Shown here in pieces: positions 3,142 to 33,735 of a stretch of DNA of 33,748 nt. The notes under the pieces are model-generated. The model was not told the DNA's origin. It saw only the letters and a list, made by a program, of their open reading frames with translations, and made no database searches. Origin of the DNA: Hyphochytrium catenoides (taxonomy: Eukaryota; Protista; Hyphochytriomycota); NCBI GenBank assembly GCA_900088475.1, contig FLMG01002800.1, forward strand, positions 1-33,748. The letters run 5' to 3'. Both the position numbers and the translations under genes were made by a program. The number at the start of each line of letters is the position of its first letter. Position 1 is the stretch's first letter.

Positions 3142-6100
3142 CTATCTCTTCTCACATCTACGTAGCCGAGGCTCACAATGCTGCTCAAGTATATGGAGAG
3201 AGAGTGTGTGCAAGTCCTCCAGCTGATCAGACCGCAGGCTGATGAGCGGTTGCCCCAGCACGCTAGTCACGTACTGGCTTTCCACCCAGCGCAGAAGTTC
3301 TCTCTGGCTATCGGTCAGTCCTGTCTGCCCGCTTTCAGCTTCCTCTGCCCCTGGCGAATGAAGGCCTTCTCGTTGTAGCCCATGTTTCTGCAACTCAATG
3401 ACTCGTAGCTGCAGCACAAGCTGACCTTCCTTCCCTCGCAAGTATGCACCGAGGGAGAGGTGGAGCCCACGCCAATAGAGCTGTGGCTGGGGCACCCAAA
3501 AGAGACTCAGGTGCTTGTACAGTCCTTGTCGTCGATCCAGCACCAGATCCTGCTGGAGCGCCTGATTCTGTAGGTACTGAGGGCAGTCGCGAAACGAACA
3601 GTGATGCTTCAACAGGCCACTCAGTTCCATCAGCTCTAGCTGATCTGTCTGAGGTCTGCTCTGGTTTAGCCGGTCTACCTCCTCCTGCGTGAATACCTGT
3701 GGCGCACCGCTGTGAAAGAGCAAGAACTCACGTTGGAGAAGCGCCTGCGCCGCAAGCCTGGAAGAACGAGTCCTCAGGCGCAGTTCGGCAGTGCGTTCTT
3801 GGGCCAGAATGGCTAGCTTATCTCCCATGATCCGTCGCCGTTCTTCAGCAGCAATGGCTTCAATAGCTGGTCGTGGATCAGGGTATAGAGGAGGAGACAG
3901 TCCAGCACGACGGGTCTGAGAGGTGTGATAGCGCAAGGCCTGGACATAGAGGCCAATCTGTAGCAGTCTAGTGTTGGTGCAGCGTGGCAAAAAGCCTGAC
4001 ACAAAGCTGTCCATGCGCCCAGCAGCCCCGTCCTCAAATCCTGTCTCTATGTAAGAGTACAGAGCGTCCGCAGTGTTCTGATCAGCCAGAATGGCACCTA
4101 GCTCCCACCGCCGCTCCCTTCCATCTTTAGTGACATAACCGTTGCGAAATTGATGATATAGCCGGGCAAAGCCGAAGACCGCCACTACGGCTTGAGGAGA
4201 GGGCGTAGCGTGTGTCCAGGTCTTGTCGTTAAAGAAGCGGCTCGAAGCTCTCATCCCAGCAGCGGCATCGAAAGTGCCGTCTCTCACTCCTTCTTCCTCA
4301 GATTCCTTCCCTTCCTTACCGTCATTGACGTCCACCGAGGCCCAAGAGATACCGAGGGACTCACGGATGTACTCCCGAGGGTCTGTTTCCTTGCCTTGGG
4401 AGTGAGCTCTCGCTCCTGTCTCTCCTGCCACCTTCTTTGCAGGCCTTTTTGCTGAACGAGAGCGGAGCATCAACCGCACCATTCTCGACACGCTCTCTGC
4501 CATCAGCCCTACAGCCACTTGCGCCAGCTGCTCCTGCATCCCATCTGTATCTCTGTCTTCGCTTACTTGATTGTTGTTGAAAAGTCTCCCAGCGGTGGGG
4601 TGAAGACAGAGGACTGCCAGCACCTGGGAGACAGATAGAACGTCATCACCTGGAGCCTCAGTCATATACCGAGCAGGATTGGGAAGCAGGAGCTTGGCTG
4701 CAATAGAGTCCCAGTGGGAGCTAGGGCTCTCTGATCGCGCCTCGCTGCTCTTTGAGCAGAAGACAGCCACATCGATGGTGTACAAGATGCGGAAGATAGA
4801 TTGAATCAACTTCTGTCGTCTCTCCCTCTTTTTATACCCATTCTCTTCCGCTTTCTGTGTGACTTCCTGTCCATCCTTCTCCCTTCCTGGAGCGGCTGAC
4901 TCCTGCGCCAGTCGCTCTAATGCGCGGACGAAGGCTGACAGCAGGAGCGCGGGTTCTTGTGAAGGTAAAGTTAGGTCTGGGTTTCGCGTGCAGACAACTG
5001 CAAGGTAAGACTTATAGAGAAGAGAAGCCCTGAAGGCTGAGTAGCAGGACGAATAGGGGAAGCGAGACTGGCCGTCCTGCCCCTCTTCACCTTTGTCGTA
5101 CCGCTCTAGAGGGTTCTCAAGCACGATAACATCCGGTGCAAGGTCCCCAGTCTCTGAATCTCTGTATTGGGCTCCCGCGTGGAGGAGACACATAGCAGAG
5201 GCGGTGTCTATCATGTCAGTCGAGACATAGCTGACCCCAATGTGCCAGGGATTAATGTTGGCCGATTCGCTGCGGAACACACGCACTGCAACGCCCGTCA
5301 TACCAGCAAAGTAGAGCCAATCTAGAACAGAAAACGAGCGTAATGCCTCAGGAGAAAGCCTTGCTAGGGACAGTCCAAGTTGCTGCCAGTGCTGAGAGCC
5401 TGAAAGTCCCGAAACAGTGGAGGTGAGAGCAGAATTTTCCTCTGCTCTCTTGTCATAAACCCTTGTCTTTCCCACCTTCAGGAAGAGATCTTCTCCAATG
5501 GCAGTGGCATCTGTTACAGAGCCCTTCAGTCTAAGAATCTTCATGCCGAACTTCATGGCGCCAGCTGGTTGAAGCCACAGCGCCTGCTGTTCGCTGGTCA
5601 TTTGGCTGCTTGCCAAGACTACGTTCGCCTCCAGCTCGTTTATCACCTCTTCTAGCGCCACCACCAATCCTCGCCTTTCTTTCATTAGAGCCACACGGGC
5701 AGGTGGGTCTAGAAGCCGCAGCTCTCGTTGGGGAACATTCGCTGCCTTCACGGACTCGAACACAGTCCGCAAGGTCTCCATGGCCTTGCTCACAGGCTCT
5801 CCAGCAATGGCTGCGACCTTGATGTCTAGGGTGAGCTCGTGGCAAAGGCGCAAGAGAGAGGCTGACGAGGAAAGGCGGCTGGAAAGCAGAACAGGTATAC
5901 AGAAGCATCGGTTCAGGATAAGCTTTCGAGGAGGAGTGCCCTCAAATAGCAGTGTTACGACTGATGACTGACTCGACCCTTTAGCTGCCTTCGGTTGGTC
6001 CTCCTGTTCTTCCTTCTGTGGCTCCTCCTGCCACGCTGGAGGGAGTCTTAAGATCCCCACCTTGCTAGGTGGAGCCACCAGAGACGTAAGAAAGCCCTTC

Positions 6101-8913
6101 CAGACGACATCTTCATCCTCAGGACAGGAGATGGACACTGAGAACCATTCTAGCGAGGACTTGACGTCCTCACAGAGATCAGCAATTACTGCGGGGAGCG
6201 TCAGAACACTTCTGCAATAGGAGATGGGAGCCATTTCAACCGCCGCAGCCATCTCTGTCAATGTCTCGGTCTTGCGCTTAGCCTTCATAAGCACTGCCGT
6301 ATGTGCGTCCTTCCCAATGCCGACGACTTTGAAAAGGCAGTTCACGCCGGCTCCAGAGATGCGCTTAGCGGCAGTAGAGAAGGATTGGTCTAGCTGTTGA
6401 GCTGCATTGTAGGTGTCTTTGCCGTCAGTGATGAGCACAAAGCAGTAGACCAGATCGGACTCTTCGCTTTGCTTCGCCTTACGCACCTCCTCTCTTAGAT
6501 GCCGACTTCGTTTCTCGTTCTCCTCTTCCTTCATGTTGTCCGTCTCTACCATTCTTTCTAGGGCACACTTCTTTTTCTCAGTGCTGTCGTTAACTCCGCC
6601 AGGGCCTTGGCGTCCTTGCATCTTTTTCGCCTTGTCTTCTTCTTTTCTCCTCCTGTGTTGGGCGTCTCTCAAAAGCTTTTCTTCTCGTTCCCTCTCCCAA
6701 CGCTCTTTGTGAGAGAGAGCAACGTCTATCGCCTTCTCATAGGCTAACAAGATATTCGTCCCGCCTTCTAACGGCATCTCACGCTGCGAAGATGCCTGGA
6801 AGAAAGCGCCATCAACATTGGGAGTATGGCTAACAGTGGAGCCAAAGAAAATAACGTCGGTCCGATCAGGCGCCAGCCGACGTTGGAGGAGTCCACAGGC
6901 TGGCAGGATGAGCTGTCTAAATGGTCCTCGACCAACAGACTTAGACCGATCCACAAGAAGAATAAGCTGCAAGCGGCACCGCGGACCAGACAAATAGTTC
7001 GACGAGCATGCCCAGGTGCGAAGAGCCCTCTTATCCACATTAAGTGTCCATAGATTATTCGTCCCGGAGAGGCGATTGAAGAAGATGCCAAAGGGCTCTT
7101 CCTCTTGCTCTTCTCCATTATTGCCCTTGCTCTTCCCTTTGTCCAGCTTCTCCTGTTTCTTCTCGTGCTTTTCACCAGGCTCTTCCTCGTCATAGATGAT
7201 CTGCTTGGCTGTCTCCTTCTGGAGGAATTCATCTCTGGAAAGCGCCTGAGCTTTTGGCCCCACCGTGATAATAAATAGAGGCAGAAACTGAGAGGAGTCC
7301 CGTAGCACATATTCTTCCGTCTCAATAGAGATGTGACTGTCGACGCCAAAGGCCAAAGGCATGTCTGTCACCTCTTCTTTCTCTTCCTTCTTCTCCTTGC
7401 TCTTCCTCTCTTTCTTTTTAGCACCCGATTCCTGATCGCACTCCTCAATGCCATCACGATGCGGCCAGCGTATCTGAGAGGAGCTAGAGCTGGAATCTAA
7501 GACGACACGCCTCTCATTCTCGAACCCAACCAGGCGGCCATTTCCCAGCAGCGCAACGCCCACAAACATCTGCCGGTAGCGGCCGGCATCCTCTACAGAA
7601 TACATACTCGCTCGACCCGCCGACCGCGCGACATACAAGCCACGACCCCAGAGAGAGCCATGAACCATTGGAAGGAGCCATCCGCGGTCCGTTATCTCTC
7701 CCGCTGCTCTCAGCCCTTCTCTAGATATGTCGGCTGCCACCGTCCTATCAGTAGTACAATGGAATGCGAGCGTGGGAGCGAAGAGAGCCTCCTTATGTAC
7801 CCCCTTCTGTTGGCCGCTAGGGTTGCCAGTCTTTCTCTGACTTTCTACCTGCATTAACTGCTGATGCACATGTATAAATTCCTTCAGAATGCGTGGACGA
7901 AGGATTCGCTGAACATGAATGCATTCTAACCCATCCCCTTTGATCCCGTTATTCCGCTGTACAATCTCTTGCATACTTGCCTCGAGCTCTTCCAGCAGCT
8001 CCCCTACCTTCTTCTCTGCCACCAATTGGCTAGCAACACTCTCGACGAGCCTTTGCGGCCCGTCTCGCAAGATGAAGAGAGGAGGAAAGTCAGAAATAAC
8101 CTTCTCTTTCAAAGGAGTTGACCCAGGGCGTTGGGCAGCAGAGCGAGGTAGCCCAACAGCAGACAGGGAAGAGGTAGAAGGCCCTGTCATTTTTAAAGCA
8201 GGTAAAGGTTCTTGCCGTGCGCTCTTCGTCTTTTGCAGAAACTCGATCACCACGTTCGTGAGGTCGAATAGGAAGCCGTCAGGAGTAGCAGTAGGATCAG
8301 ATGCCTGTAGGTTGGGAAAAGAAGTAGCTTGGAGAGAAGAGGACGATGAACAAGCACGTCGTATGTCTACTGCGTGGTCACTTGCTCTCCGGAGAAGTAG
8401 TAGAAGCACCTCCTGTTCCCCGAAGGAGATGCCGAACGTCCCTGCTGGCCAGAAAAAGAGAGCTGGAGGCTTCAATGGGTAGTCAGTAGGCAAACCGAGG
8501 ATTAACTCTACTTGTTGGGACATCTCTGATGGGTGGACATGATGAGGAAAGCAATAGGGCAAGGATTAGGATGAGGGTGGGGTTAGAGGCAGACGGGCAA
8601 TGGGATAGCGGGACTTACCTGGAGGGGAAGAGGATGATATAGATCTCCCAATGAACCTTGCCCAGCGCAGATAAGTTCCTGCCTCTCCTACAATCGACGG
8701 CCCGTTTGTAGTCTGTCGGATAGGTTGTCCTGCTATTTGCGAGTCAGAATCTGGGTCCATGAGGTTTATTCCCCAAGAAGCGGGTCCAGAAGGGACCCGA
8801 GGATCAGAGGGAGAGAGCAGGATGAAGTCCTCGTCATAGATGGCCTGCAGGGTTAGTAGCTCTTCCTCTAAGTTCTCTGGAAGCCGCTCCTGGGCTTCCT
8901 CTTTCTGTTCCAT
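3142..8913 (-). CDS. Large multidomain protein: RWD domain + PARP-like ADP-ribosyltransferase catalytic domain + von Willebrand factor A domain + uncharacterised C-terminal region (~1892 aa, 2 exons)
   Basis: Exon 1 8913-8619 (MEQKEE...EEELLTLQAIYDEDF, RWD N-helix). The 93-nt intron 8618-8526 has a GTAAGT donor, a CCTAAT branch-like site and a CAG acceptor, and is phase-compatible. Exon 2 8525-3142 contains LILGLPTDYPLKPP (RWD YPxxxP), PARP motifs LAFHCT / HGSLWGRGLYVA / EEYVLRDSSQFLPLFII, and vWA MIDAS LLVDRSKS...GGTNI...VLITDG...VVGIG. Confidence 0.85.
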
Positions 8914-9115
8914 TGTTCTATGTGTTTCGCCCACACACTTCCTTCCTTCCCGTGTTCCAGCTCCGCGATGCTTTCTTCCTCTTGCTTCTAATCAATGGCG
9001 GCTTCTTCGATGGCGCCTAGGCGCCCGTCTGACTGGGATTCTTGCTATCCGTCGTGCTCTTGAAAGTTGTTGTTCGTTCCTCTGAGTTAAGGACTGTCCT
9101 TCTTTTTCAACAGAG

Positions 9116-10593: not shown

Positions 10594-11517
10594 TTAGGCC
10601 CGGACCACGGGAAGATCACCGACATGAAAACTCTGTGAGGGCCTTCGATGGTTTGTGTAGTCTTCTTCAAACGCATTTGCACTCTCATCACCTCTATAGG
10701 TGTGGTACCTTTGCATAGGGGCTTGCTGGCCCCTAACCGCAGGGCGAAAGGACCTTTCCGCTCTGGAAGTACTATAGGAACCAAGTGCAGAGACAGAGTT
10801 GGCAGAAAGTGGGCGCTGCTTCCTCGCGCCGCTAGTTCGAGAAATAGAAGTGGTAGGTCTAGCCCCACCAGTGCTATAGTGCGTGGTACTGCGAGAGTGA
10901 GGAGCAAAGCTGTTCCGGGTGTTGAAGATCTCTCCTCTAAGTCCTGACTCGAGCTTCTCCTCGATTACCGCCAGCTCGCCGGAAGAATCAACAATAAATC
11001 GTCGGAAATCACTGATGATAGCCTGACAGCTGTCGCAGTATCGAGATCTTCGAATCGATCCCGCAGGACCCATAGGGGTAGAGAAGGAGATCTGAGAAAG
11101 AGTTCTAACTAGCGATCGTAGTAGCCTCGCTCTGTCTGCTACTATAGCCTTGTCCTTCGATAGAAAAGAGAAGAGATGCTTCTTGGGAAACTGATAGCTG
11201 CGGATAAAGTTCTTTAGAACACTGCAGTTGGAACAACTGGAGGCGGGGTCTGCAGACTGGTGAGCTTTGCAGATCCTATCCCAGAGCGCATGGAACTCCG
11301 AATAGCGCCGCTCAACTGCGAAAGACTCTCGAGTGAGGGCATCTACCACGAGGATTGTGTACAACGTGGCAGACTTCTTGACTTTAGCGCAGGTCACGGT
11401 GGCGAAGAGTATCTCATTGGTATTACTAGGAACTCCAGCGTTGGGCCCATTAGAGGAGGAAGAGGTAGAAGTAGAAGAGGGTAAGGAATCGACGGGAGAG
11501 GTATCCTTGACAGCCAT
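10594..11517 (-). CDS. PX (Phox homology) domain protein, ~307 aa, single coding exon
   Basis: First ATG of the 10594..11562 ORF is at 11517. TLYTILV...FAVERRYSEFHALW...FPKKHLF...IVADRARLL match the PX hallmark motifs RRYSEF, FPxK and R. The C-terminal tail is low-complexity and S/R-rich. Confidence 0.85.
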   Translation of the reverse strand: MAVKDTSPVDSLPSSTSTSSSSNGPNAGVPSNTNEILFATVTCAKVKKSATLYTILVVDALTRESFAVERRYSEFHALWDRICKAHQSADPASSCSNCSVLKNFIRSYQFPKKHLFSFLSKDKAIVADRARLLRSLVRTLSQISFSTPMGPAGSIRRSRYCDSCQAIISDFRRFIVDSSGELAVIEEKLESGLRGEIFNTRNSFAPHSRSTTHYSTGGARPTTSISRTSGARKQRPLSANSVSALGSYSTSRAERSFRPAVRGQQAPMQRYHTYRGDESANAFEEDYTNHRRPSQSFHVGDLPVVRA

Positions 11518-14049
11518 TTTGTCCTCCGCTTTCGATGAGTATTTGTAAATGGAAAGCCGCACTCTTTCTGTTTCCTACTAGGCTCTCATAAGTCTAGCTC
11601 TACCGGAGAGAACAGAGCTCAAGAGAGATCCTGCTGGTCCTTTAGAAAGGCAAGCCCGCCGCAACTACACGGCAAAGACGTTTCCTCTTGTGCAAGATAC
11701 AAGAGCTATAGAGGACGGGATGAAAGAGTGAAAGTGTCTTCTGAAAGTGAGGCAAAGCAGAATTGATTCCGATAATGACCGAAGAAAGAGAGAAAGGAGT
11801 GAGAGATAGGAGAGAAAGACAACGGGCGGCAAGAAGCAAGAGAGATAATTGATGATGACGGACCGAAGAAGCGAACAATGACCTTGAGCAACGGGCGAAC
11901 TTTGAGACGACCAAAAAGGTCTCAGTGTCTTGACACTTTGTGCTCTGAAGCTTCTTTCTTCCCTCGTCCACCGACAGAGCAAGGAAAGTACTTGCTCACC
12001 TGGCTCTGTCAATGGTCTCGGGTCTCTCTGCAGGTGCCTGCTTATTGTGCTAACGCTGCCAGAAAAGAGAAGAGAGAAGACAAAGGGAACAAGGCAATGA
12101 TGGAGAGAGAGGAGAGGAGGACGGACATAAAAAGGAGGAAGAGTCAGAGGAGGTTGTGGAGCAACGAGTGAGTCAGACGGACGAGACAGAGAGATATAGA
12201 GTTGGCAATATGGGAGACAGAGTATAGAAGGCTCACATCAGAAAAAGATATTGAGTATGAGGAGGAACGAAGAAGAGAGCTCGCGAGAGGAGCCAATGAA
12301 AAGACAGAGTGGGTAAGAGATATAGGGTGAGATGAAAAAGAGGAGAGCGAGCGTAGATGAGAGAGAGAAAGGAGGAGACAAAGTGCAAGGGTGGAAAACG
12401 GCCCCTGACCCGCTGTCATCAGCCACAGAAGCGCCTTTGGCCACTGGAACCTCATGGCGGCTTCCCCGCCAACAGAAAGCGCAGCTCTAGAAAGACTCAG
12501 TTGATATACAGGGTATTTCTTTAGAAAGAACCATATTTCTTTTTTCCGTCACTACTAACATTTGGAGGCGATGTTTCTGGAGGAAGGTGCGGGGTGCGGC
12601 GAAGGATAAGGTACGGACTAGCCAGTAGTCCAAGATAGGCCTCTCTGCATTCTGGGGCTACTTGATTATTGTTTACTGGCTCAGGGTTAAATGAGTAGGC
12701 TACGGATGATCTGTGTCATTATTACTACTCCGTGTTGGGGCAATTTGGCTACTGCAGCTTCTTGCTTTCGAAGCTCAGAAAAGCCTTCGAGAGACAGAGA
12801 TGAGGGAAGGGAGAAAGACGAAAGAAAGGCTTGTTTCTTTGGGTATCACAGTTAATCACCTAGCAGAGTCTTTCGAACCAAGACTCCTTCCTTTGCCTCT
12901 TCGAAATACTTGCACGCCATGGCCCTTTGGCTGTAGTTCTGTAGGTGGGTCTACCAGGTGATCATAGAGCCAATTACATGGGTATAGGAGTTCATCCTAT
13001 GGGCCTTGTGATTCTCTCCAAAGTTGTCTTGTAGAAAAAGGGCGCAAAGCATGGGGACCCTTTTTCACATTTACACCTCGTTGGACATCAAAGGCTGTGG
13101 AGGCAAGAAGACCAGCAAAGTGTCTTCTTTAGACAAGAAAAGGAAAGCAAAGGCCTACGAACTCCAGAATCAGTAGGAGAAAATAGAACTGAAGATCTTG
13201 CTGTCTAAAAGTGGGCTAAGATTCTATAAAGGTCATGGTTCGAAGGAGGAGATGCATCGTTGGCTCCACTGACCTGTGGGGTTTGACATTATAGCAACGT
13301 CAGCTCTTGAATTGTCAGTACAGGTAGTGACCTAAGATAGCCGCCAATGTTAGTTCTTATGTAGGCTTATTCCTAAGGGAGGACCAGTTTATGACCTATC
13401 AACCTATCAAAAGGGCAATCAGGTCTGATAAAGTCGCATTTGTGGCTAATGGAGTCTACGCAAATTTTCCATCTAAGGTTTCAGGTCCATTACATTTTTG
13501 TTTTCGTTCGAAAGTACACAATACTTTAAAACTTCAGCCATATAAACGATCGAAAGCTTCATGACCCGAATCTTTCCCAACTCCACAGAACCAGGGTATT
13601 TGCCTGGGATCTGGGGATGGTTTGGCGGGGTCCGAAAACCATTTCTTGTGCATCACAATGGCGCGAAAACTCCCTCCTTGACCTGAATTATTTGATTATT
13701 TCAAAGCTTAGGTGAAACTTCTATTTAACCATGAAATATTTTTGTTAAATAAAGTTCACATGGAAGCTTTCCTTCGTAAGAGGCCAAGAGAATACCAAAA
13801 ACAAAAAAAATTGGTGGAAGATGTTATTAGATCCTTCACTTCTGTATCTTTTTCAGGCATTCTCAGTACAGATACTGCCACTCTGGCTTGAAAGATAAGC
13901 TGCAGAAGCCCAAGCCTTGTCAGTTTTCCCTCTGAGCTTTGCTCTCTGTTGCTTCTCAGCGCCAGTCTCCGTTCCAGATCTGATATCTGGCAGGTTATTG
14001 TGTTTTGTGCTTGTACTGTAAAGGAACGCAGATGCTTTATTTGGCCATC

Positions 14050-16989: not shown

Positions 16990-17009
16990 GAGAGAGAGAG
17001 ACAGAGGGC

Positions 17010-17045
<36 letters not shown>

Positions 17046-17340
17046 GGGAGAGAGAAGGGGAAGGGGAGGGGAGAGGGTAAGAGAGAGAAGAGAGAGAGGG
17101 AGAGGAACAAAGAGAAAGAGAGAGAGAGAGAGAGAGGCAGAGAAAGAATGAGAGAGAAAGAAGAGGAGAGAGAAAGAAGAGGAGAGAGAAAGGGAGGGTA
17201 AGGGTAGACAGACAAGACAAGAAGATAGACAGGTCGACAGACACAGAGAGAACCAGGAACAGAAAGAGAGGGAGAGAAGCCACAGAGAACCGGAGAAAGA
17301 GAAGAGAGATCCCAGAAAGAGAATGACGGAGAGACAAACT
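16990..17340 (+). repeat. (GA)n / purine-rich low-complexity tract
   Basis: Near-pure A/G run with (GA)n stretches, seen directly. Confidence 0.95.
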
Positions 17341-17574: not shown

Positions 17575-19384
17575 ATGCACAGCGAACTGGCGATCAGGGT
17601 TCCCCTGGAGGCTCTAAGCCCGCTAGGAGTACCAGAGAAGGTGTCTCTTGGAAATGAGAAGAAGGAGCTTCTTCTCTCAGGAGAGACGAAGGACATCTAT
17701 AACATTGCTCTCGATGGAGAGGTGCCCAATCTTTGGAAACCTAAGCACATTGGCCTCCTTGCCAACTGCTGGGCCACTGGCCTAGCCTTTGGCTTCTCGC
17801 AAGCTATCATCTATCCCATCGTCAATGTACACTTTAACTCTCAGAACCAGGTGGTCAGCGCAGCCACCAGCGTTGCCTTACTCTTCTGGTGCTATAAAAT
17901 CTTCTTTGGCCTTCTCTCGGACGCATTCCCTATCTTTGGGCTGCGGAGGAAGCCCTACATCTTCATCGGATGGACCATTGCGATTGCCGCCCTAGCTATT
18001 CTGGGCTACCTAGGAGATGACGCTACCAGCGATGCTTATGGGGTGACGATCATTGTAAGCATTCTAGGAGGGTGCAACTTGGGCTATGTGCTAGCAGATG
18101 TGGCAGGAGACGGGCTGATAGTCAGTCTAGCTCATAGAGAGCCCATTGAAGTGCGAGGAAGAGCTCAATCTCTTACCTACATCGTCAGAGGGTGCGGTTA
18201 TGTCCTGGGCTGTCTCCTTGTGGGCCTGGTCTTCAATAATCCCAAGTATGGAGGGAACTTTGGCTTTGGACTAGACATTTCTTCCTCCGTCTGGCTCGTG
18301 CTTGGCATTCTTACCGCCATGATGCCTCTGTATCTCATTCTGGAGGAGAAGCCCCTGACGGGGTCCCGACGCGGTGGTGCAGATGTGGTCGCGCTGTTCT
18401 ATGATACGTTGCAGAACAAAGCAGTCTATCAGATTATTCTCTGGACCACCGTCTCAGGTTTCTTAGGCACCATCTCAAACAACGCCGTCTCCCAGGCCAA
18501 TAACATCTGGTGAGATGCAGCGCACGCGGGTTGATAACGATTGCGTTGTTAGGCATGTGCTTTCGTTTATATACTAACTTAAGTCCTCTTGCTTGCTTCC
18601 TGCCTTCATTGTCTCATCTGTGTCTTGGGCCTCGTCCACTATCAGCTGCCTTGGCTCTCTGTCCATCCTTTTGGTGTCCTCCTATCTAACTCTGTCTTTC
18701 TCTGCGTCTCCTAGGGTGAAGCTTACTCCCTTCCAATACTCATTGATGGCCATGTTTGAGAGCTTGATCTCTGTAGTGGGACTCTGGCTTGTGAGAACCT
18801 ACTTCCTTGAGACCAGCTGGCGGACCATATATTCCATCTCCTTCATTGTCTCTTCTGCTCTTTCCCTCCTATATCTCCTCGTCGTGTACGACATCATCCG
18901 CACGGCATGGTTTGTCATCTTCTCTCAAGTGTCCGTCTATTTCTCCCAGTCATGGTCCTTCTTCGTGGGCGTCTTCTGCATTGTAAGTACTGCCAACGAA
19001 TTGCAGCTGATGTTTCACTTCTTATGCCATTTCTGATAGAGAGAAGGGCTGCCCTGCTTTCTCTCAGGTTTTCTACTGGTGGCTTGAGTATGGATGTTCT
19101 GCTTGGAGTTCTCTGTTCTCTTCAAATTGATTAGTAGGGACTGTCTGTTTCGCAAAAGGCATTTGCTCCGTAGGTGGCAACATTCTAGTTGGACCGCAGT
19201 GCGCCTAATATTGATCGTGCAGGTTGAGGTCTCAGCCCCAGGCGTGGAAGCGATGACATACGCGATGATCACAACGGCTAGCAACATGGTTGTGCCTGTC
19301 TCTGGGATTGTCTCAAACCAGATTGCAGGTGCATTCTCATCCTCCTCTTCCTCGCTTTCCCATCGTTTGCTCTCATTCTCCTCC

Positions 19385-19441
<57 letters not shown>

Positions 19442-20729: not shown

Positions 20730-20761
<32 letters not shown>

Positions 20762-20764
20762 AGA

Positions 20765-20804
<40 letters not shown>

Positions 20805-21996
20805 AAGATATGAGAAGAGGAACGAGAGAACAAGCAGTGGAGAGCGACCTGAGTTATGTCATCGATGCTAACATGGCAGCAACAAGAATAGAAGGAAGTA
20901 GCTTGCGACAGACCTGTAGAGAACAAGGGAAGAAGGCCACTAGAGAGGAGACACATCTTCTACAAGGCAGGCAATTGCTAGGAAGGTGATGACGGCTGTG
21001 ACAAAGATAGAGATATGATGGAGTAGGGCAACAAGCAACTCACACATTGTAGATTATAAGAGGCAAACAGACAGACAGACAAAAAGAAGTAATAAAGGCC
21101 AGTGTCAAGAGTGAAGGAGGAGGAGGCGATGTACCTAGGTACTTCCGCCAATATCGTGATGCCTCGCTCCTCGGCTGTCTGCGTCTTCTGATGAGGAAGT
21201 CGATGGGTTTAGATCAGGGAAGCAGGAAAGACATTCTTAAGTAAGAGAAGAGACCGCCCGAGCAACAGAGAAGAAGAGAGTTAGACAGAGACAAAAAATG
21301 AAGAAGGGGAGAAAATCTCGGAGTCACGCAGAGAAGTAAGATGAGAAAGTGACCAGAAACAGCGGGAACGGGGAGAGACGCCGAAAGTGCGGATGGCAAG
21401 GGGTTCTAAGTGGCCATGATGGTTTGCTTACTTTCCCTGTTGTTGCAGCATGCAGCGCATATTGAAGACTTCTCTCTTCCTGCTTTAGGACATCGAAGGA
21501 TGGACGCCAAACTACAAAGCCGTTGATGTCCCTTTGGTAGGCAGGTATGGCAACCTAAAGCAAGGCGTTGATGACGAGAAATGACGACGCGACAAAAGAG
21601 AGAGAGAGACAGAAAGGATATCGAGAGAGCAGAGAGAGAAAGATGGAAGAGTGAGGACATTAGGCTGACGGAGGAGGAGAGGCCTTTCACTAAATAGTTG
21701 TATGTCTTCTCAAGGGTATGTTGCCCACCTGCATTCTCACTTGTCCATCATTCTCTTCATCTTCTTCCTCCTCGTCCTCCCAAACGGAGAAAGAAGAGAA
21801 ATGAATGCAGGCGTACTCTCTTCGCAGCAAGCCACGTGTTTGCGCTTCCTCCTTGTCCTAATGACAACATGCACAAGGGATGGAGGATGCGCCTTAGATA
21901 TAATTACGGCTTTCGTTAGTCGGGCTGTACCCAAGGACTGCGCCAGTAATGAGAAGGTATTGTCGAAGAGAGAGAGAGGGAGGGACAGAGATACAA

Positions 21997-22027
<31 letters not shown>

Positions 22028-24101
22028 AGAGAGAGAAATTAGGGGATACTGAAAAGGCGTCATGATGCACTTGAACTAATTACGGAGTCGGAGGTATGTG
22101 GAAATGCTAGTTTTGAGGGTAGACGACCTCCTCATTGAGATACCTCTTCATTTCCTGCTGCCTGACTCTCCTGTCGCTTCTTATTGCCACCTCCTCCCAT
22201 CAGCTTTTTCACTTCTTTCGGACTTTCTCCCGTGCCATACAGAAGAAAGTCCCCTCTTTCTTCTCCAGCTCGAAGTTTCCCTAGAAGCAACTCACTACAT
22301 TCCTTGCGATGGAGATCTAGATCTCTCCTAGGAACAAGAGGTCAAGCAAGAGGAACAGAGAGGGCAAAAAAAAAGCCGATCATGGGAAACAACGTAAGGA
22401 GTTAGCTTGTCCAAAGCAGAACACTTTGACTGACAGAGCAAGAATAGCAGTATGCTAGGATCCCAATGAGGATGGGAAACTATGCAGCCGCTGCTGGACA
22501 GACTGCAAGACGGACAGAAAGAAGGAAAGAGAAGGCAATAGCCTTGCAGAGTAAGAGAGACATGGTCCATATGAGCTTCACTTTGCGGCTGAGAAGGAAG
22601 AGAGAGAGAGAGGAAGCTTTTTTCTCCTACCTGTCTCCTGAGATCAGGAAGTAGCTGGCGATACTTGGTAGCTTCTTCCTACAGAGGATGAATCAGCAAA
22701 AGCAAGAGCCATTTACGGCACAATAGAGAGTAAGAGAAAGTAAGGAAACGAAAAGCAGATCCAGGCGGGCAGGGGTCCGAGAGAGGCTGGACCGGTGAAG
22801 GCGAAAGAATGTAGATAGTAGAAGAGCAGAAGAAAAAGCCAGAGAGAGCAAAAACAACAGAGGAGACCACCACCAGAAGGATCTCGATGGACTCCTGCCT
22901 GTCCACGAGGAGCAAGCGGGAGATGAGCCACGGCAGGAAAAGTTTTGGAGATGAGATCTATGACTAAATAGAAGATAGAACAGACGAGACCAGGAGTCTC
23001 CAAAAAAGAGAGAGAGAGAAAGAGAGACCGAGAGACAGAGAACATGGACAGTCCGTGCCGAACAAGAGTATAAGAACAGGATTTTGAGCGGCTGGGCTCC
23101 ATACTTGGCAAACATGAGCGGAGGGCCGAGACTGTCATCTTCGCCTCGCACTTGGAAGGTAAAGACTGGGATTAGCTGCGGGTGGTTATGTCGGATGATG
23201 GTGTTGAGGATTAGTTGTTTTGTGCAGATAGGCATCGGATCGAGTGGCGGTGGTCGTGCTGTACGACGAGGACGAGAGAGAGAGACAGATAGAGAGAAGA
23301 CGGAGAAGAGAGCGAGAGAGGAGCGGCACAAGGAACAGGGATGAGCGGGAAACACTGAAAAAGAGGCAGGTAAAAGTATAGATGCGAGAAGAGGTTCTTG
23401 ACCTTGCTGCCAAGCTGTTTGTCTCTCTTGATCGTCCCTCGGACTAGTGATCCGGCACGGGGAGGACGGAGGAGAAAGCGGAGTCGTTGTGCATCTTCAT
23501 TCACAGGCAAAGGGTCGTCTGCCACTGCCTGCGGAGAGAAGAATAGTAAGATTAGCGACCGCGGGCGAAATGAGAGAAGAGAAATGCCAGAAGAAAGAAG
23601 AACTGTTGGAGAGGACGAAGAGAACGAAGAGATTGGAGCAGATTAAATGATGAAGAGCAATTGCAGAAGAGAAAAGAGAGATTGCGCGTAGGAATATTAA
23701 CAACAGAGTACTTTTTGCCGGCTGACAGAGGTGAAAGTAAAGATTCAGCCCTACAGGAGACAAAAGGAGAGCAAGAGCTTGAGAAAAAGATAGAAGAGGG
23801 CAGNNNNNNNNNNNNNNNNNNNNNNNNNNNNNNNNNNNNNNNNNNNNNNNNNNNNNNNNNNNNNNNNNNNNNNNNNNNNNNNNNNNCGAAAGACCCGCAG
23901 CTCACGTTTCTAGTCTCTCCTGTCCTGGGTCGGGATGGCGAAGGTTCTTCTCTGCGTTGAGTTTGTTCGAATAGCCCTCTCACACCATTCCCTAGAAAGA
24001 GCAGAGTGAATAAGCTTTTCCCTTTCCTCTTTCTCTCCCTCTCTTTCAATGATTCTCTCTTTGTCTTTCCGTTTGCTACCAGGTCCATATCCTGCCATCA
24101 T
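20155..24101 (-). CDS. Divergent Tubby-domain (TULP-like) protein, ~10 exons; 5' exons uncertain
   Basis: Phase-consistent exons: 23528-23403 (FLLRPPRAGSLVRGTIKRDK), 23175-23105 (LIPVFTFQV..PLMFAK), 22678-22631 (KKLPSIASYFLISGD), 22327-22144 (LLLGKLR...FLLYGTGESP), 21937-21875, 21554-21432 (VAIP...VWRP), 21187-21135, 20690-20489 (TSVKNF...LSLLK), 20262-20155 (VADDVFEVSYRFPLSPFQAFGIALSR). These are colinear with the Tubby motifs LRPAP/CRITRDK, SNYLIS, GKLR, ASVKNF and DVFTMDYxYPLxAxQAFAIALS. Start is ATG 24101 or 24088, upstream of an N gap. Confidence 0.82.
20729..20804 (+). repeat. (GA)n microsatellite in a Tubby intron
   Basis: Seen directly. Confidence 0.95.
23804..23886. other. Assembly gap (N run)
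   Basis: Ns in the sequence; further gaps at 30382-30404 and 33202-33244. Confidence 0.98.
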
Positions 24102-24267: not shown

Positions 24268-25626
24268 TCAACTCTTTTCACTTCTTGGTTTTGCTTCTCT
24301 CCTTTCACTCTGATCCTGCCTCTCTTCATCTTCAATCATCGCGTTCCTGCTAAATAGCGAACCTTCTCTCTGCTTCTCTTCTTTCCCTTCCTCCTTTCTC
24401 CTCGGACTGTCAGCGGATCCTGGCCTTCTAGTGCTGCCTGGTTGGTGCTCCACCTTCACCTTTTGTAAGGAGCGGAGCAAGCGAGTGAGGGGAGAAGGAG
24501 AGAGAAGGAGAAGGCTCATGATGTATAGGCAGGCAGATCTAGACGCACAACATGAAAAGGAAAAACTAGACAAACTAAGAGTGCGCGGGAGAGAGAAGAG
24601 AAGAGAAGAGAAGAGGGAGAGAGACACCCAGGAAAAGAGAGAAAGAGATAGAAAAAGCGAGAGAGAGAGAGCCAGAGAAAGAGAGAATAAGACGGAATTG
24701 GGAAGTGAGTGGTGAAGAAGCTGTCCGAAGGTCGATGAACAAACAGCTCAAGGAGCAGGCGGTCTGTCTCTATCCAGCCCCGAAAAGAGAGAGAACACGT
24801 GGCCGAGCAAGGGAGAGAGAGAGCCATGCTCCAGGCCAGAGAATCTTACCTTTCTTGGACTCTTTCGACTGGGAGAAGAACTGGAAAATGAGCTCGCTCG
24901 TATCATCTCTTCTTTTCGCGACAAAGACAGTGAAGAAGGAGAAGATGGGAAGGGAAGAGTTTCCTTTGTTAGGAAGATTAAGGAAAATGCACCGATGTAA
25001 TTCAGGGAATAAGGAGAAAGGAAACAACCAGAGCTAAAGAGGAGAGACAGAAAAAAGAACGAGAGAGAGAGAGGGCGACCAGGAGAGAGAGAAGTTGACC
25101 CAGGAGATGTGATCAGTGGAGCTTGGGTGTCGGGAGCGAGAGGCAAGCGGCAGAACAACCTCTACATCTAGAGGAGGAAGGAGCAATGGAAAACGACAAG
25201 AGAAAAGAAGAGAAAAAAGAGAGAGAGAAAAGAAATAGAGAGAGATAGAGGGGAAAAGAAGAGAAAGAGAAGAGCAACAGAGGCGGAGAGAACAGATGAG
25301 GAGTGTGGTTCGGCACTGTTGCGGATCAAAGCAAGAGAGAAGACGGGACGGGTAGCTCGAAATCTTCCTGGCCCGAAGAGGATAAGATGGGAACCCTCAG
25401 GGCCACGGGAAAGGCTGCGGCATGCCATTAGAGCAACTGATATCATGCTATCTCGATAGTACGAGGAAACAAGCAACAGCATTGAGCGAGAGAGTGGGGG
25501 ACAGTAAGAGAAAGGGGAGAGAGTGACAGAAAGAGAACAAAGAGAGAGAGAGATACATATGTATATATATATAGAGAGAGAGATACATAGAGAGAGAGCG
25601 AGAGCGAGAGCGAGAGCGAGAGCGAG

Positions 25627-25667
<41 letters not shown>

Positions 25668-28600
25668 GAGAGAGAGAGAGAGGAAGAACAGGTCATGGCA
25701 GGGCGAAACGGCAGATCGTTTTACAGGAGGACTAAGAATGACTATTAACCCGAGACGCAGATAAACCGAGACCATTCCAATTTGTATCCCTTTACACATA
25801 GTATCTAACGAAAATAAGCCCGGGTCGAGACCTGAATCTTTAACCCGGGTGTTCCATGGGTGTTACAGTCATTCCTGTGCTGAGAAGTGCTTTCCCTTTG
25901 TCGGAGAGTGCCCGCACCATGCGCCGTCTCCCATCTCTCGCGTCCCTGTCCCAGTCCTCTCCTTCTGGCTCTTCTCTATCTTTGTAAGGCGAGGAAGAAG
26001 AACGTTGGCTTCGTTGTTGCTCTTGATGATAAGGAAGAGAGGTGCGTTCGTTCTCTTCTCTGTCTGCTGATCTCTGACTGTGAATTTGTTGCTCGATGCT
26101 CAGGGCTTCAAGCGGTGGCATCTCTAGGGGTGAAGGCAGCGAGACCAGTCTCTCTCTGCTACTCTCGTTCCCTCCACGAACAAGCTCTTCTTCTTCGTCA
26201 TCATCTACCTCTTCTCTCTGCCCTTCCACAGAGCCAGTGCCTATAATAAATAATTGCTTCCCAAGATGTCCTGCATCGTCCTGTGCGGCTAGTACGCCCT
26301 CATCGGTAGCAGGAGAGCGGATGACAGCCAGAGAGCTTTGGGGCCTAACAAAAGTGGACCCTAATCGTGGAGGAGAGATCCGTGGCCGTCATTTTCCAGA
26401 AGGAGTAGAAAGAAAAGAAAGGGAAGAGTGTAGCGTGCAGAGAAACAATCGCGATGGCCTGGCCTCAAAAAGAGAAAAAGGCGGCTCACCTATGCTCAAC
26501 AAAGATTAGCGGTGTACAGTGTGAACACACAGATATAGGATAGGCTATCATTTGACAGCATGATAGCCCGACATGGGCCTTTAAGAAGTACATGGCAACA
26601 CTGAGACCCACCTCCTCTCCTCGCGCTTCGAAGGCTTTCGTCTCCTGTTTTTTCTCTGATAAATCTGAGACGGGCTATCGATGCTTGAGTCTGGAACTTT
26701 AGTCTCTCCTCTGCCTCCTTCACCTTCTCGCTCTTCAATATGTCCGAGACCAGCTGCAGGTCCCACAGCGTCCACAGGTTATGTCCCAGCGCAGGCAACC
26801 GGACCCCAGCCGCGTCATTCCTTTGCGTAAATGGGAGGGTCGAGAGGAGAGGAAAGGCAACCTTCAGGAGTCGATCATGCAGTGTGAGCATCGACGTCGT
26901 CGTACACAGGCAACGGAGAGCGGAGAGCTCTCTGCAGTGTGAGCAAGATGTCGAAGCCCAGCCCGACTAATAGACAGAAAAACTTCATGGCTGAGGACCA
27001 TTACATAGCTAAATTGCACCAGCCTCTTGCAGCCCAAGTGGAAGCGTAGTCTCTATAAACGAAGAGTATGTCCTCACCGTATCCATTGCTGGCTAGCACT
27101 TGATTGTGCGATAGAAGCAATTTGTACCAAGAAAGGGGCAGTTTTTCCTCCCTTCAGTACTTCGTGGAACTTGTCTCTTAGACGCGCCATCACCGTTGAA
27201 AACATCATTTCATTCGCATCCAGCTCTACGAATGTAGCATCAAACAACCGAAAGAGTCCGCTAAAGATCTGGTAAAGACGAAGATGCACAGATAGAGAGG
27301 AAAGATAGAGTTGAAGCGCAAACGAGGGAAGAGAGAGCGACAGGGAGAGAGAGAGAGTGAGACGAAAGCGAGAGAGTAAGAGAGCGTGGAGAAAGAGAAA
27401 TGAAGGGTACAAGGCAAAAAGTGAACAAGGTCAGAAAGATATAGATGGACTTGTGCTGTAAACCTTAGACCACCAGTTAGACCTGCAGCCAACTACGGCC
27501 GGCCCTAATGAACCCTCGCTTGTAAATACTGTCTAACCCTTCCCACGCTTCATCCGTACCCCTAAACCTTCACTCCCAGGGCAGGGCTTTCTATGTCCTG
27601 CTAGGTCAGGGTCGTCCTCCCTCTCATGCAGATTTCTTTGCAGTGCACACTCCATCCTTACTTTTGTCTCGCCTTATTGTTCTCCTTACCTCATAGAAGC
27701 CTGCTTTCGTGGCGAAGAGGGACCAGAAGATATCTGGTTGTCTCTTGACAGAAATAGACGCTCTCGCCTCGTCCAGTTCTCTTCTTCCAAAGCGCACCAT
27801 CTTTCCCACGTCTATCCCTAAGAACTCCGCGAAGATCATCCTGCAGAGGTTCACTCCTACAATGGCCCACGAGTAGGAACCTCTCGCAATGAGCTCTAGC
27901 GCATCTCCTCTGTGTACCTCGCAGATGTACACAAGGCTCTTTAGAGCTAACACTCCTCCGCCTCTAAGATCGCTGCAAGGGTCATCTTTCTGAAAGCCTA
28001 ACAATCGCCATTCTAATGATTGTCGGCAATAGGGAATGATAAATGGCGTGATATCTATCTCCGCTCGCTGGCAATGGACACCAAGGACAAGATCAAGAGA
28101 AGAAGGTCAGTTTCAGGATGGAAGAAGCGCTAGAGCCCGGACGAGCAGAGAATCGTAGTCGCAGAGGCAGAGCCGCTGATAACGAAGGGGGAGCGGAATG
28201 TCAACTTTACCTAGCCATAGAGACAGGCATAGAGACAGGCAAGAGGCAGAGAAAGAAAGACCTGTGCACTTTGAAAGGACAGAGAACTGCTTACTTAAGA
28301 GGCACTCATAGTTAGACAGAATAAGCGAGGTGCAAGGAGAAGACAGAAGAAGTCCTGCTTCTGACTTACAGAGTAGTTCTGTGGGTAGACGCCTGCCCAC
28401 AGTCTCCTCAATAAAAACTCGTGCTTCTCCTCTTGGAACGCTGTCTTTAGTTCTATCAGAAGGGTGAGTGCGGTCTTTATCTCCTGTTTGGAAGGGTAGC
28501 GCTTCTCAATGTTGGCACGTAGATCCTCGATCCCCGCGGAGAGAGACTTTTTAACTGCCTTCGTCAGCCACATCGTGCCTCGGGGCAGGAAGGGAGAGAG

Positions 28601-29169: not shown

Positions 29170-29874
29170 GTCCTTTCTCTTCTCTCTCTTCTCTTCTCTT
29201 CTCTTCTCTTCTCTGTCTCTCTTTCTGGGCCTGTCTAGGCTGCACCTTTCCCACATTCCGCTTTTCTATTTCTCGTATTCTCTGTCTGTTCCTGTTCCCA
29301 CCCTTTTTCCTATTATTCCTATTATTGGCGTGTAGCTTTAGATATCTCTTCGCCCTCTGTCTACCAAATGTCTCTCTCACCGAGACGTTTATATCTCTAC
29401 AACCTCTGTCTCGTTATGAAAGGGTGTTGTGAAGGTGCTCTCAAAACTCTTTCTTATCTGTCTCTTCCCCTCTGATGATGGCTGGCCTTCAGGTCTAATC
29501 TGGCTCTTTGGGTCCAAAACCTCTATGAGTACTATACCTTACCTTAATCGTCAGATATCTCTTACAAGCGCACAGCTCTATTCAAGAACCGGTTCCTATC
29601 AAATACACTATGACTTAAAATCAGACACAGCATCAACAGTAAGTCGCACTTGCGTCAGGCAAGTCATAAGTCATAGCCTCCATTCCCAATAAAAATAAGG
29701 AATTATAGCTTAATATATCAAGAATCATTAGAAGTGTATTCAGAATCGTCATACCTCCCACTCCATCCCCAGGAGCAAGGACTCCGTTACATTGAGAACA
29801 GGATAACAATTTGTCTTTTCGATGGCTCCACTCGTACGCTTCCCTCCTCTCTCACTCTTACTCTTTCCTCTTCC

Positions 29875-29887
29875 CTCTCTCTCTTTC

Positions 29888-29956
<69 letters not shown>

Positions 29957-29995
29957 CTCGCCTTCTTTCTCTCTCGCTCGCTCTTTCTCTCTCCT
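29875..29995 (+). repeat. (CT)n microsatellite (~30 perfect units) between the divergent ELMO and IQ genes
   Basis: Seen directly. Confidence 0.95.
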
Positions 29996-30228
29996 CCTCC
30001 TTCTCCTCGCCTCTCTTCTCCTGTTCCTTTCGTTAGCTTTCGCCTTCTCATCAAAGGTCTCCGTATCTAATCTCCGCGCATTTCTCTCCCCTCGACCCAA
30101 CTCTTCATAGAGGTGAGAGCGTTATGCCCTCCTCACTCAACCCACAGGCCCGCTCTTGGCAAGGCTGCTAGCTCTTCTCCCTGGCGCCCTGGCCACCGCT
30201 CGGAGAGGATGTAAGAAGGGCTGAGAGT

Positions 30229-32684
30229 ATGTCCACCAGGAAAGAGGCTCGGTCCGATATCCATGGGGAAGAGACAGCAGAAGAAGCCCAGCAGGGTCCT
30301 TCATCATTGAGAAGAGCAGCAGAATGGGGCCAAGTGGTAGGAAATGTGTTGTCGCTTTGCTCTCCACATTTGTTGACTAGANNNNNNNNNNNNNNNNNNN
30401 NNNNGTTGCGCTGTGACTCGATAGCTTTGACTCTGTCCTTGCTTCTCTTCTCAGTTCTTTCTGGTTTCTGTATCCCTTTCTTTCTTTGCTTTGCCTCTCT
30501 CTCGCTACCACTTCGTGTGCTATCATTGCTGTCTTTCCTGTTTTCTCTCTCTTCATGCTCCTCTTACTCCTCGCCAATCTCTTCCTTTCTGCCTCTTACT
30601 CTATCTGCATGCTAACCTTCCTTCTCTTCTCTTCTCTTTCTAGGAGAAGTATCCTCTCTCTCGCCAGATCTGTTACATTGACCAAGAAACAGGAAAAGCA
30701 GTCATCCGAAGTCTCTCTCTTTCTTCTCCCTCGTTCAAGTCTTCGCTTCCGTCTCCGTCTCTTGCAGTCAAATTTCAAGAGTTTGATGCGCAGCAAGATG
30801 AAAAGATCGCTGCCCTTCGACAGCTTATTTCCTCTCTCTCTCCTTCTGCCACAACCTCTCTCTCTCCCTCTCTGTCTCCGACGGGCCCTACCTTGGTGGG
30901 AAAGGGGAGAAGAGAGAGGGAGGACGGGGCTGGAAAGAGAGAAACGTCAACAGAGGTTGTCTCTCTACATCGTTCTGAGCCTGTCAACTATTTGGAAATA
31001 AGACAGAATGAGGCTAGCAAGAGAGCCAGCATGCGTAACAAGGGAAAGCGAACACTTCCTTCTTCCGCTCTCTCTTCCTCTCTCTCTCCAACTCACTCTT
31101 CCCCTGTTCCACCCCCTCTCTCTTTCTCTTCTCGTGCCCCTATGCCACTTTCTCTCTCCGGTGAAGGGAACCCATATGAAGCCCTTCAAAAGCTCCAGAA
31201 GACAGATCCGGCAAGGCCTCTCCCTTCTCCCTCTAACGCAGACCTTTCTCTCCCTTTAATTCTTCCTTTCTCCGAGAATTTGCTTTCCTCTTCGGCTGCT
31301 CCGACCTTTCTCTCTTCCTCTTCATTTGAAGAGAAAGAAGAAACAGGAGAGAGAGAAGCCAATGTGAGTTTGCCGCCTCTTAGCGGGGGAGAGCGGACAC
31401 CACGAAAGGAGAGAATGAAAGAGAGAGATAAGGAGATGAAGAAAGGCCAACAGAGCGCAAAGAGACAGAGCGGAGACAGAGAGAGGGAGAAACTGAAGAG
31501 AAGGAGAAGCGAGAGTAATCAGCATCTTTCTGGTCCTCAGCTCTCTCCCCGCGCCATGGAAGTGCTGAAGGCTAACGAAGAGCTCATTACAAAGCTAAAG
31601 GAAGAGGCAGAGAAGGAGAGAGAAGGAGAGAAACGAGAGAGAGAGAACACTAAGCGGCAATTGCAGCGCTTACGATACCAGTTGGGATTCGAACTGTTGG
31701 AGAAGACCTTGAGCCGATTCTGGAAGAAGAACAATCTCTCTCTGGCCATGAGGAAATGGACTGCGTTTACGGAGCATGAGAGAGAAGCATGTAAGACTAA
31801 GAGGAGAGAGAGACGAGAAAGAGAAGGGGGAGAGAGAGGACGATCTTGCCTTATGGCTTTCCTTCGCTCCGGATAGCTGTGTTACCCTTTCCTAACGCTT
31901 ACTCTTTCTTACCTCCCGGAGTCTCTTCAGTCACTTTCTCCACTGTCTTCCAGCCTCTCTCCTTCCTTTTGTTTTCTTTCCTCCTCACGTCATCCTCATC
32001 TTTCTCTCATCCCTTGTCCGTCTCTCGATGTCTCTACTTCTTCCATCTGTCTCTCCCTGTCGCTGTTTTTATCTTTCCTATGTGGATATAGTAACTTTGC
32101 CCAATTGAGTGTCCACTCGTGGCGGACGTCCACCAGAAGACGCTGTCTACTCTCCTTCTTCCGCTGTCACTGCCATTTCTCTCTTTCTCTCTCTCTCACT
32201 CTCTCTCTCTCATTGTTCCCCTCTAGACGCTGCAAGGCACTGGCTTGAGAGTCGAGCAAGGGTTATACAGCGCGCCTACCGAGCTTACAAGCAAAGAGAA
32301 GAAGAGAGAAAAAGAGGTGCCACGTGCATTCAGAGCACAGCAAGGATGTTTCTCGCCAGAAGGGAGAGAGAAAGAAGAAGAAGAGAGAGAGCAGCCACAG
32401 ACATTCAAAGAGTAATCAGAGGATGGCTAGCAAGAGAAAAGGTAACGCAGTCATCCACCTTGCGAGTTTACTCTTACTCTCTCTCTCTCGCTCGCTCTCT
32501 GCGCCGCGCCTGCAGCCTTACCCCATATCGCTCTCTTTCTCTGTCTTCCTTTCACCCTGTCCGTGTCCTCTCTCTTCATCCTTGAGGAGCTATTGGTTTT
32601 CCGCAGCAGCTCTCTCAAAAGACGTCTCTTCTATCACTTTTGGATTGTACCTTCTTGGTCCCTTATCAGGTCTTCCTTGCAAAC

Positions 32685-32751
<67 letters not shown>

Positions 32752-33487: not shown

Positions 33488-33695
33488 GTCAGTAGATTAA
33501 CGGAGATCTGATAATGTTTGTGTGAGTGAGACGGACAGACAGGAGAGAGACAGAGAGAGACACACACAGGAAGAGAGAGAGAGAGAACGAGCAAGAGAGA
33601 AAAGATGGAGAGAGGGTAAGAGAACTGAGAAAGAGGGAAGGATAGAGGAGAGAGAGGCGTGAGAATGAGAGAGAGAGAATAAGATGAAGAGAAGA

Positions 33696-33735
<40 letters not shown>

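Follow-up and report, generated by a model that had tools for sequence, protein, structure and literature searches.

A stretch of 33,748 nucleotides (nt) from Hyphochytrium catenoides (contig FLMG01002800.1 of assembly GCA_900088475.1, positions 1 to 33,748 of the forward strand; hereafter the window) raises the question of whether two open reading frames (ORFs) on its minus strand, separated by a single stop codon, belong to one gene and, if so, what kind of enzyme that gene encodes. An earlier note on this DNA had proposed that together they specify one giant protein in which an RWD domain, a PARP-type ADP-ribosyltransferase (ART) domain and a vWA domain are followed by a long unassigned C-terminus. 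On the evidence of its sequence, the locus holds one intact gene of two exons, which encodes a predicted intracellular multidomain ADP-ribosyltransferase of 1,892 amino acids (aa). The family to which it belongs, as traced by comparison of sequences, is widespread, ancient among eukaryotes and unnamed, and not a one-off fusion; the order of its parts is fixed, namely a 2H phosphoesterase in some members, then RWD, ART, vWA, a three-helix bundle, a large helical module and a cluster of cysteines and histidines.

Gene structure and domains

The two minus-strand ORFs (3142-8562, of 1,806 codons, and the upstream 8566-8934) lie in one frame, with a lone TAA between them. Removal of an intron whose donor GT stands at 8618-8617 (GTAAGT) and whose acceptor AG stands at 8527-8526 (CAG at 8528-8526, after a pyrimidine-rich tract) deletes this sole in-frame stop, and the exons join in phase 1 through a Glu codon (g from the first, ag from the second) to give a product of 1,892 codons. 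Lengths, frame and splice sites agree with the single 93-nt intron and the product size given in the earlier note. An alternative genetic code, or readthrough of the TAA, was considered and rejected, given that the 1,806-codon ORF has no other stop and that canonical splice sites bracket the TAA.

The main support for the splice comes from the RWD domain, whose two halves, encoded by different exons and searched apart, match the positions of the model collinearly and complementarily. Exon 1 (8620-8913, minus strand) and exon 2 (3145-8523, minus strand; 1,793 aa, with residue numbers counted here from the Met at 8523) were searched separately. The Pfam RWD model (PF05773) recognizes exon 1 over positions 1-27 of 112, under its gathering score (expectation value, E, of 0.0033), and a family RWD model aligns residues 13-35 of exon 1 with its positions 1-23 and residues 5-50 of exon 2, which include the motif DYPLKPP, with its positions 51-94; positions 105-119 were also matched. 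That exon 1 alone scores weakly as RWD, and that the support for the junction comes from sequence alone, would fit a wrongly placed 5' end, in which translation would start at the Met at 8523, exon 1 would lie outside the mRNA and the RWD would be truncated. Such a gene model seems very unlikely, since exon 1, on the same strand, supplies exactly the first 23 RWD positions that would be missing, the canonical GTAAGT and CAG bound an intron that preserves the frame and takes out the only stop, and the chytrid relatives start with a complete RWD at residues 4-9.

The relatives bear out the identity of the domain. Full-length RWD is found by Pfam in P0051 (E 9e-15), P0161 (8e-14), P0095 (3e-13), P0109 (6.5e-13) and P0003 (8e-9), and the gathering score is exceeded in P0003, P0008, P0026, P0051, P0095, P0109 and P0161; P0008 and P0095 appear to have two RWD domains. 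Among the members in which 130 residues or more precede the ART, of which there are 26, the iterated family model detects an RWD in 13. Matches that cover the ART alone prove to be fragments of RWD-ART or 2H-ART proteins, which indicates that this type of ART and the RWD travel together. No Cys occurs within 40 residues past the YP motif (YPxxPP) of the window protein, which also has none at the position of the catalytic Cys of ubiquitin-conjugating enzymes (E2s), and no Cys is conserved there in the family RWD alignment; the lack of a Cys after the motif is consistent with a non-catalytic E2-like fold, as had been proposed.

The ART domain has been recognized by several routes. Pfam PARP (PF00644) matches residues 206-420 with E 1.9e-5 and a score of 24.7 bits, just short of the gathering value (26.7), and a protein-language-model search (ESM Atlas features) with residues 150-470 returned PARP clusters at 0.94. 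No match was obtained when the single window protein was compared with PDB sequences; a profile made from an alignment of 29 sequences over residues 140-860 (A2) matched tankyrase-1 (E 7.6e-12), tankyrase-2 (about 5e-10), PARP10 (1.7e-8), PARP12 (5.5e-8), ZAP (9e-8), PARP4 (6e-5), PARP3 (6e-4) and PARP1 (6e-3), with PARP16 not among the PDB matches at E<=0.01. An AlphaFold2 model of the ART-vWA part has a mean predicted local confidence (pLDDT) of 77.4, exceeding 90 in the domain cores, and its ART part is paired by Foldseek with the ART domains of PARP10 and tankyrase (probability 1.0, target-normalised TM-score, TMt, ~0.65). The catalytic triad is found as H255 in AFHCT, Y297 in GRGLYVA and E404 in EEYVL, the last of which parallels the tankyrase motif AEYVIY. 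The sub-threshold Pfam match, the family profile, the structural comparison and the three triad residues all agree with the PARP-type catalytic domain that had been read from the sequence.

The ART domain probably binds NAD+ and is catalytically active, to judge from the His and first Tyr, which are kept in essentially all aligned relatives, and from the catalytic Glu, which is also present in the window copy. The opposite notion, that it is a pseudo-enzyme and the protein a mere scaffold, in the manner of PARP13/ZAP or PARP9, could draw on a Pfam score below the gathering value, on the replacement by Cys of the Gly of the H-G-S/T motif in the window copy, and on a long disordered loop, rich in Ser, Lys and Glu (about residues 343-390), that breaks up the domain. 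We regard it as highly improbable, considering that H255, Y297, Y308 and E404 are all in place, that the family-wide conservation of the first two holds, and that the ART core is modelled with high confidence.

The vWA domain is barely visible to Pfam in the window protein (E about 0.1 only), and it is the predicted structure that reveals it: its core is modelled with a pLDDT of about 90-97, and Foldseek places this Rossmann-like fold with the vWA domains of Plasmodium TRAP (4f1j_A, TMt 0.68), ITIH1 and CMG2. The metal-ion-dependent adhesion site (MIDAS), formed by D525-x-S527-x-S529, T589 and D700, is intact, as had been claimed, and is kept in most relatives. A long helical hairpin rich in Lys and Glu, confidently modelled, is inserted in the domain at about residues 591-686.

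Beyond the vWA lies a tail of about 900-1,000 aa. The earlier note had left some 1000 aa unassigned, and they are so in Pfam, which gave no family for any of 52 tails, only scattered chance matches, among them three weak ones to Bag6_BAGS on the three-helix bundle; the region is nonetheless conserved throughout the family. A model built from an alignment of residues 790-1793 with 51 relatives (A1) has a pLDDT of 83.7 and a predicted TM-score (pTM) of 0.76. It begins with a beta-rich segment and a three-helix bundle (residues 792-975), for which the structural matches are generic helix bundles (BAG, spectrin, domain I of RRF), followed by a core in which the motifs GMxG, PW, DTASA, TRNP, LTEA and AExxSR are nearly invariant in the family. 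Towards the end, a cluster of cysteines and histidines carries the motif GLLxHHCxFxxCPxYL, and its conservation among the aligned sequences is high (C1642 in 47/47, C1647 in 45/46, H1604 in 45/46, H1671 in 40/40 and H1688 in 37/38); it is plausibly a zinc site, as far as conserved residues can suggest one. The features of the gene are collected in Table 1.

Table 1. Features of the gene for the RWD-ART-vWA protein; residue numbers refer to the protein of exon 2
Feature	Position	Strand	Residues	Remarks
Exon 1	8619-8913	minus		295 nt; ATG at 8913-8911; encodes N-terminal RWD half
Intron	8526-8618	minus		93 nt; phase 1; GTAAGT, pyrimidine tract, CAG; contains TAA at 8565-8563
Exon 2	3142-8525	minus		5,384 nt; stop at 3144-3142
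RWD, N-terminal half	8619-8913	minus		Helix 1 (LEEELLTLQAIYDEDF) and three predicted strands
RWD, C-terminal half	8224-8525	minus	1 to ~100	Strand 4, DYPLKPP motif, closing helices
PARP-type ART	7249-8106	minus	140-425	Pfam, family profile, Foldseek, motif columns; H255 at 7761-7759, Y297 at 7635-7633, Y308 at 7602-7600, E404 at 7314-7312
vWA	6151-7011	minus	505-791	MIDAS D525, S527, S529, T589, D700
Beta-rich segment and three-helix bundle	5599-6150	minus	792-975	Tail model
Tail core	3895-5451	minus	1025-1543	Small strand-strand-helix subdomain and about 11 helices
Cys/His cluster (candidate zinc site)	3460-3714	minus	H1604, H1640, H1641, C1642, C1647, H1671, H1688	Beta hairpins between helices

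The family and its relation to known PARPs

Residues 1-1200 were used for an exhaustive HMMER search of 1.84 billion cluster representatives, which gave 132 matches at E<=1e-3, of which 79 reach E<=1e-10 and 28 reach E<=1e-30. The best has an E of 2.6e-110 at 35% identity, and no relative in the searched protein collection exceeds about 37%. A word-index search with the 1,793-aa exon-2 protein returned no match, because at about 35% identity shared words are too sparse. When the whole exon-2 protein was compared locally with phmmer, most of the long matches proved collinear from the ART (~residue 240) to ~residue 1700.

Members have been found in chytrid fungi (Siphonaria, Irineochytrium, Chytriomyces, Physocladia and Zopfochytrium), Amoebozoa (Mastigella and Clastostelium), choanoflagellates (Hartaetosiga and Salpingoeca infusionum), Rhizaria (Paulinella and Papus) and a dinoflagellate (Cladocopium), and the remainder come from environmental assemblies. 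The spread over at least four eukaryotic supergroup-level lineages indicates that the family is probably old. Most members are called "hypothetical protein" or "PARP catalytic domain-containing protein" at their source, and a few merged gene models are named after a neighbour (beta-secretase in Chytriomyces, kinase in Cladocopium). P0165 and P0166, from Cladocopium goreaui, join a protein kinase domain to the family tail; they are probably the product of a merged gene prediction and were not used as evidence.

A maximum-likelihood tree of the tail core puts the window protein in a sister position to the chytrid clade (support 99/95), and the gene looks like a vertically kept member of the family, not part of a conflict-type island. 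The earlier proposal of a stress or anti-pathogen module found no support here.

Part of the family carries a 2H phosphoesterase (PF13563) N-terminal of RWD-ART, with E values down to 5e-23. The four carriers (P0005, P0030, P0037 and P0080) belong to Clastostelium, two choanoflagellates and one environmental assembly, and the fusions hint at RNA-end or ADP-ribose-phosphate chemistry in that part of the family. Pfam did not find the domain in the window copy or in its chytrid relatives.

Full-text searches of the literature found no description of an RWD-ART-vWA protein, and the surveys of PARPs, which recognize six eukaryotic clades, do not describe such an enzyme with a conserved 900-aa tail. 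That the family is missing from the commonly used model organisms would account for its having escaped notice. The order of domains put forward in the earlier note as uncharacterised is thus upheld, and no characterised or named family with this architecture emerged; what did not stand is its uniqueness, for the 132 relatives have a recurring layout, albeit mostly under the uninformative names given above.

Two of the known clades resemble the protein enough to raise the question of whether it is a diverged orthologue of one of them. The first is clade 5, the vault PARP4, organized as BRCT-ART-VIT-vWA (PMC2964712, PMC4245714). Like the window protein, PARP4 is a cytoplasmic multidomain protein in which ART precedes vWA in one chain and a long C-terminal region serves for interaction, and it is among the PDB profile matches (E 6e-5). 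In PARP4, however, a BRCT precedes the ART, a VIT precedes the vWA and an MVP-interaction domain is present; here these were not detected (no BRCT or VIT by Pfam at E<=1, and no tail that matches any Pfam family), whereas in the window family an RWD is added at the N-terminus and the tail, of ~900 aa, is a different one. In addition, PARP4 chains are not among the structural matches of the tail model, and the ART profile is far nearer to tankyrase (7.6e-12) and PARP10 (1.7e-8).

The second is clade 6, which comprises PARP6, PARP8 and fPARP2 and shares with the window protein an E2-related RWD placed N-terminal to a PARP-type ART. RWD-like or UBCc domains have been noted only in this clade, which includes a PARP6/8 homologue of Reticulomyxa that bears an RWD (PMC2964712, PMC4245714), and it is this RWD-ART arrangement, in PARP6/8 and in the Reticulomyxa protein (PMC4245714), that the window protein recalls. 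A split RWD has been predicted in PARP6/8, RWDs being modules that bind E2s or GCN1 (PMC10450202), and a 2026 review of fungal ADP-ribosylation lists fPARP2 alone with an RWD. Proteins of this clade combine the split RWD with a helical extension and a C4-type zinc finger, the fungal ones also carry a UBCc at the C-terminus, and a vWA is lacking. Here, in contrast, the RWD is unbroken at the protein level, only the intron dividing it in the gene, a vWA and a large tail come after the ART, PARP16-like sequences are missing from the profile matches, and neither a C4 zinc finger of the PARP6/8 type, nor a helical extension, nor a UBCc was seen; Pfam detected no UBCc or zinc finger N-terminal to the ART. 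Finally, the nearest PARP-only matches in the 1.84 billion proteins are fragments of the same family. Taken together, these differences make descent from either clade hard to credit, and we would give it little weight.

Proposed function and the ubiquitin connection

What the protein does has to be deduced from its parts. The modelled core of the tail resembles the E3 ubiquitin ligase module of UBR4, the hemiRING-UZI (PDB 8BTL), a match that was repeated in a second run and is the sole structural match that spans a whole domain of the tail. In UBR4, this module recruits UBE2A/B, and its C2HC zinc ligands are essential (PMC10873205). A true relationship between the tail and the E3 modules of the UBR type may exist, although on the modelled structure we lean against it.

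The reading that we favour, and consider rather probable, is that of a family of ADP-ribosyltransferases equipped with docking modules, whose likely partners belong to the ubiquitin system. As far as the sequence allows a mechanism to be outlined, the ART would most likely modify itself and bound partners, while the vWA would bind an acidic residue of a partner through the MIDAS metal. The non-catalytic, E2-like RWD and the modelled tail may provide the surfaces by which the enzyme docks and is brought to its target. The likeliest partners would be components of the ubiquitin system, with ADP-ribosylation and ubiquitylation of the same target coupled; they are proposed on account of the E2-like RWD, the tail core with its likeness to an E2-recruiting module of UBR4, and the probable zinc site. 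In the literature, an RWD N-terminal to an ART has been read as hinting at cross-talk with ubiquitin-like modification (PMC10450202, PMC13720257, PMC4245714).

The logic of ADP-ribosylation-dependent ubiquitylation of the same target is that of tankyrase and RNF146, and it is to tankyrase that the ART is closest in sequence. Tankyrase, however, is built with ankyrin repeats and a SAM domain, and its partner ligase, of the WWE-RING type, is a separate protein, while no WWE, ankyrin, SAM or RING was found here, and coupling within one chain is, in the present case, a hypothesis.

Several observations weigh against the favoured reading. In the window protein itself, RWD, PARP and vWA each score under the Pfam gathering threshold, so that their identification draws on the relatives and on structure prediction. 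The residue at the third triad position differs among members (E, Q, A, S, I or T), so that either poly- or mono-ADP-ribosylation may be catalysed. The 8619/8525 junction is predicted from splice signals and from comparison with relatives. As to the tail, its core and the UBR4 module share 11% sequence identity and superimpose with a root-mean-square deviation of 6.3 A; Foldseek gave nothing under E 0.02 for the tail, only weak helical-repeat matches; profile searches of the PDB with the whole tail, the core and the end found no UBR4 sequence and nothing credible; and the aligned part lacks conserved equivalents of the C2HC zinc ligands of UBR4. Residues 1025-1140 contain no conserved pairs of Cys or His, their sole conserved Cys being C1112 (40/52 sequences), and the invariant Cys/His cluster of the family lies ~60-140 residues downstream of the aligned part. 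Searches of the ESM Atlas by shape and by features with the tail returned nothing usable.

The ubiquitin link drawn in the earlier note has thus gained one weak lead, the likeness of the modelled tail core to the UBR4 module, which neither profile-level sequence similarity nor conserved zinc ligands in the aligned part accompany, and it should be regarded as a lead and not as a result. If the likeness were true, a ligase module so far known from UBR proteins only would be widened.

A bolder reading takes the same likeness literally and makes of the protein a single-chain hybrid of ADP-ribosyltransferase and ubiquitin ligase. In it, a divergent E3 module of the UBR type would form the tail, its metal site having moved to the C-terminal Cys/His cluster; the RWD would help to recruit the charged E2, and choosing and marking the target would fall to the ART and vWA, with the result that a single polypeptide would write both marks or would ubiquitylate ADP-ribose itself; the system would be an ancient eukaryotic one, lost in animals, plants and yeasts. 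To this reading we allow a small but real chance.

A different direction is suggested by the parts that accompany the ART on its N-terminal side. Proteins that bind GCN1 do so through an RWD at their N-terminus, and phosphorylated ends of nucleic acids are substrates in vitro for several ARTs of the PARP type. In the family, no N-terminal partner is as constant as the RWD, and four members have an N-terminal 2H phosphoesterase. The enzyme could, then, be directed at RNA or the ribosome: where ribosomes have stalled or collided, GCN1 would be the docking site of the RWD, as it is for GCN2, IMPACT and RNF14/RNF25, the ART would modify a translation factor or a phosphorylated RNA end, and in the relatives that have it the 2H domain would process 2',3'-cyclic phosphate or ADP-ribose-phosphate products. 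This is unlikely in our judgement, given that the window copy and its chytrid relatives are devoid of the 2H domain, that no RNA-binding domain was detected in any scanned member, and that RWDs also bind E2s and kinetochore partners, with nothing here that marks the GCN1-binding type.

For the question of how ADP-ribosylation couples to ubiquitin-like signalling, the family is a compact natural system, and it holds a large module that folds confidently in the models and has no Pfam family.

Other features of the window

The next gene upstream, on the same strand, is represented by an ORF of 322 aa (10594-11562, minus strand) with a phosphoinositide-binding PX domain (Pfam E 9.7e-5). On the plus strand, an exon-sized ORF at 17515-18513 matches the BT1 family of folate/biopterin transporters (E 5e-16) over no more than the first third of the profile, and further exons should therefore lie downstream. 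Another ORF on that strand (32109-32585) has IQ calmodulin-binding motifs (E 4e-13). Many long intergenic (GA)n/(CT)n microsatellites occur, at 16990-17189, 19377-19441, 20730-20808, 21967-22036, 25573-25682, 29843-30017, 32692-32751 and 33543-33733, and they account for the strong skews in GC and AT seen locally along the composition profile of the window.

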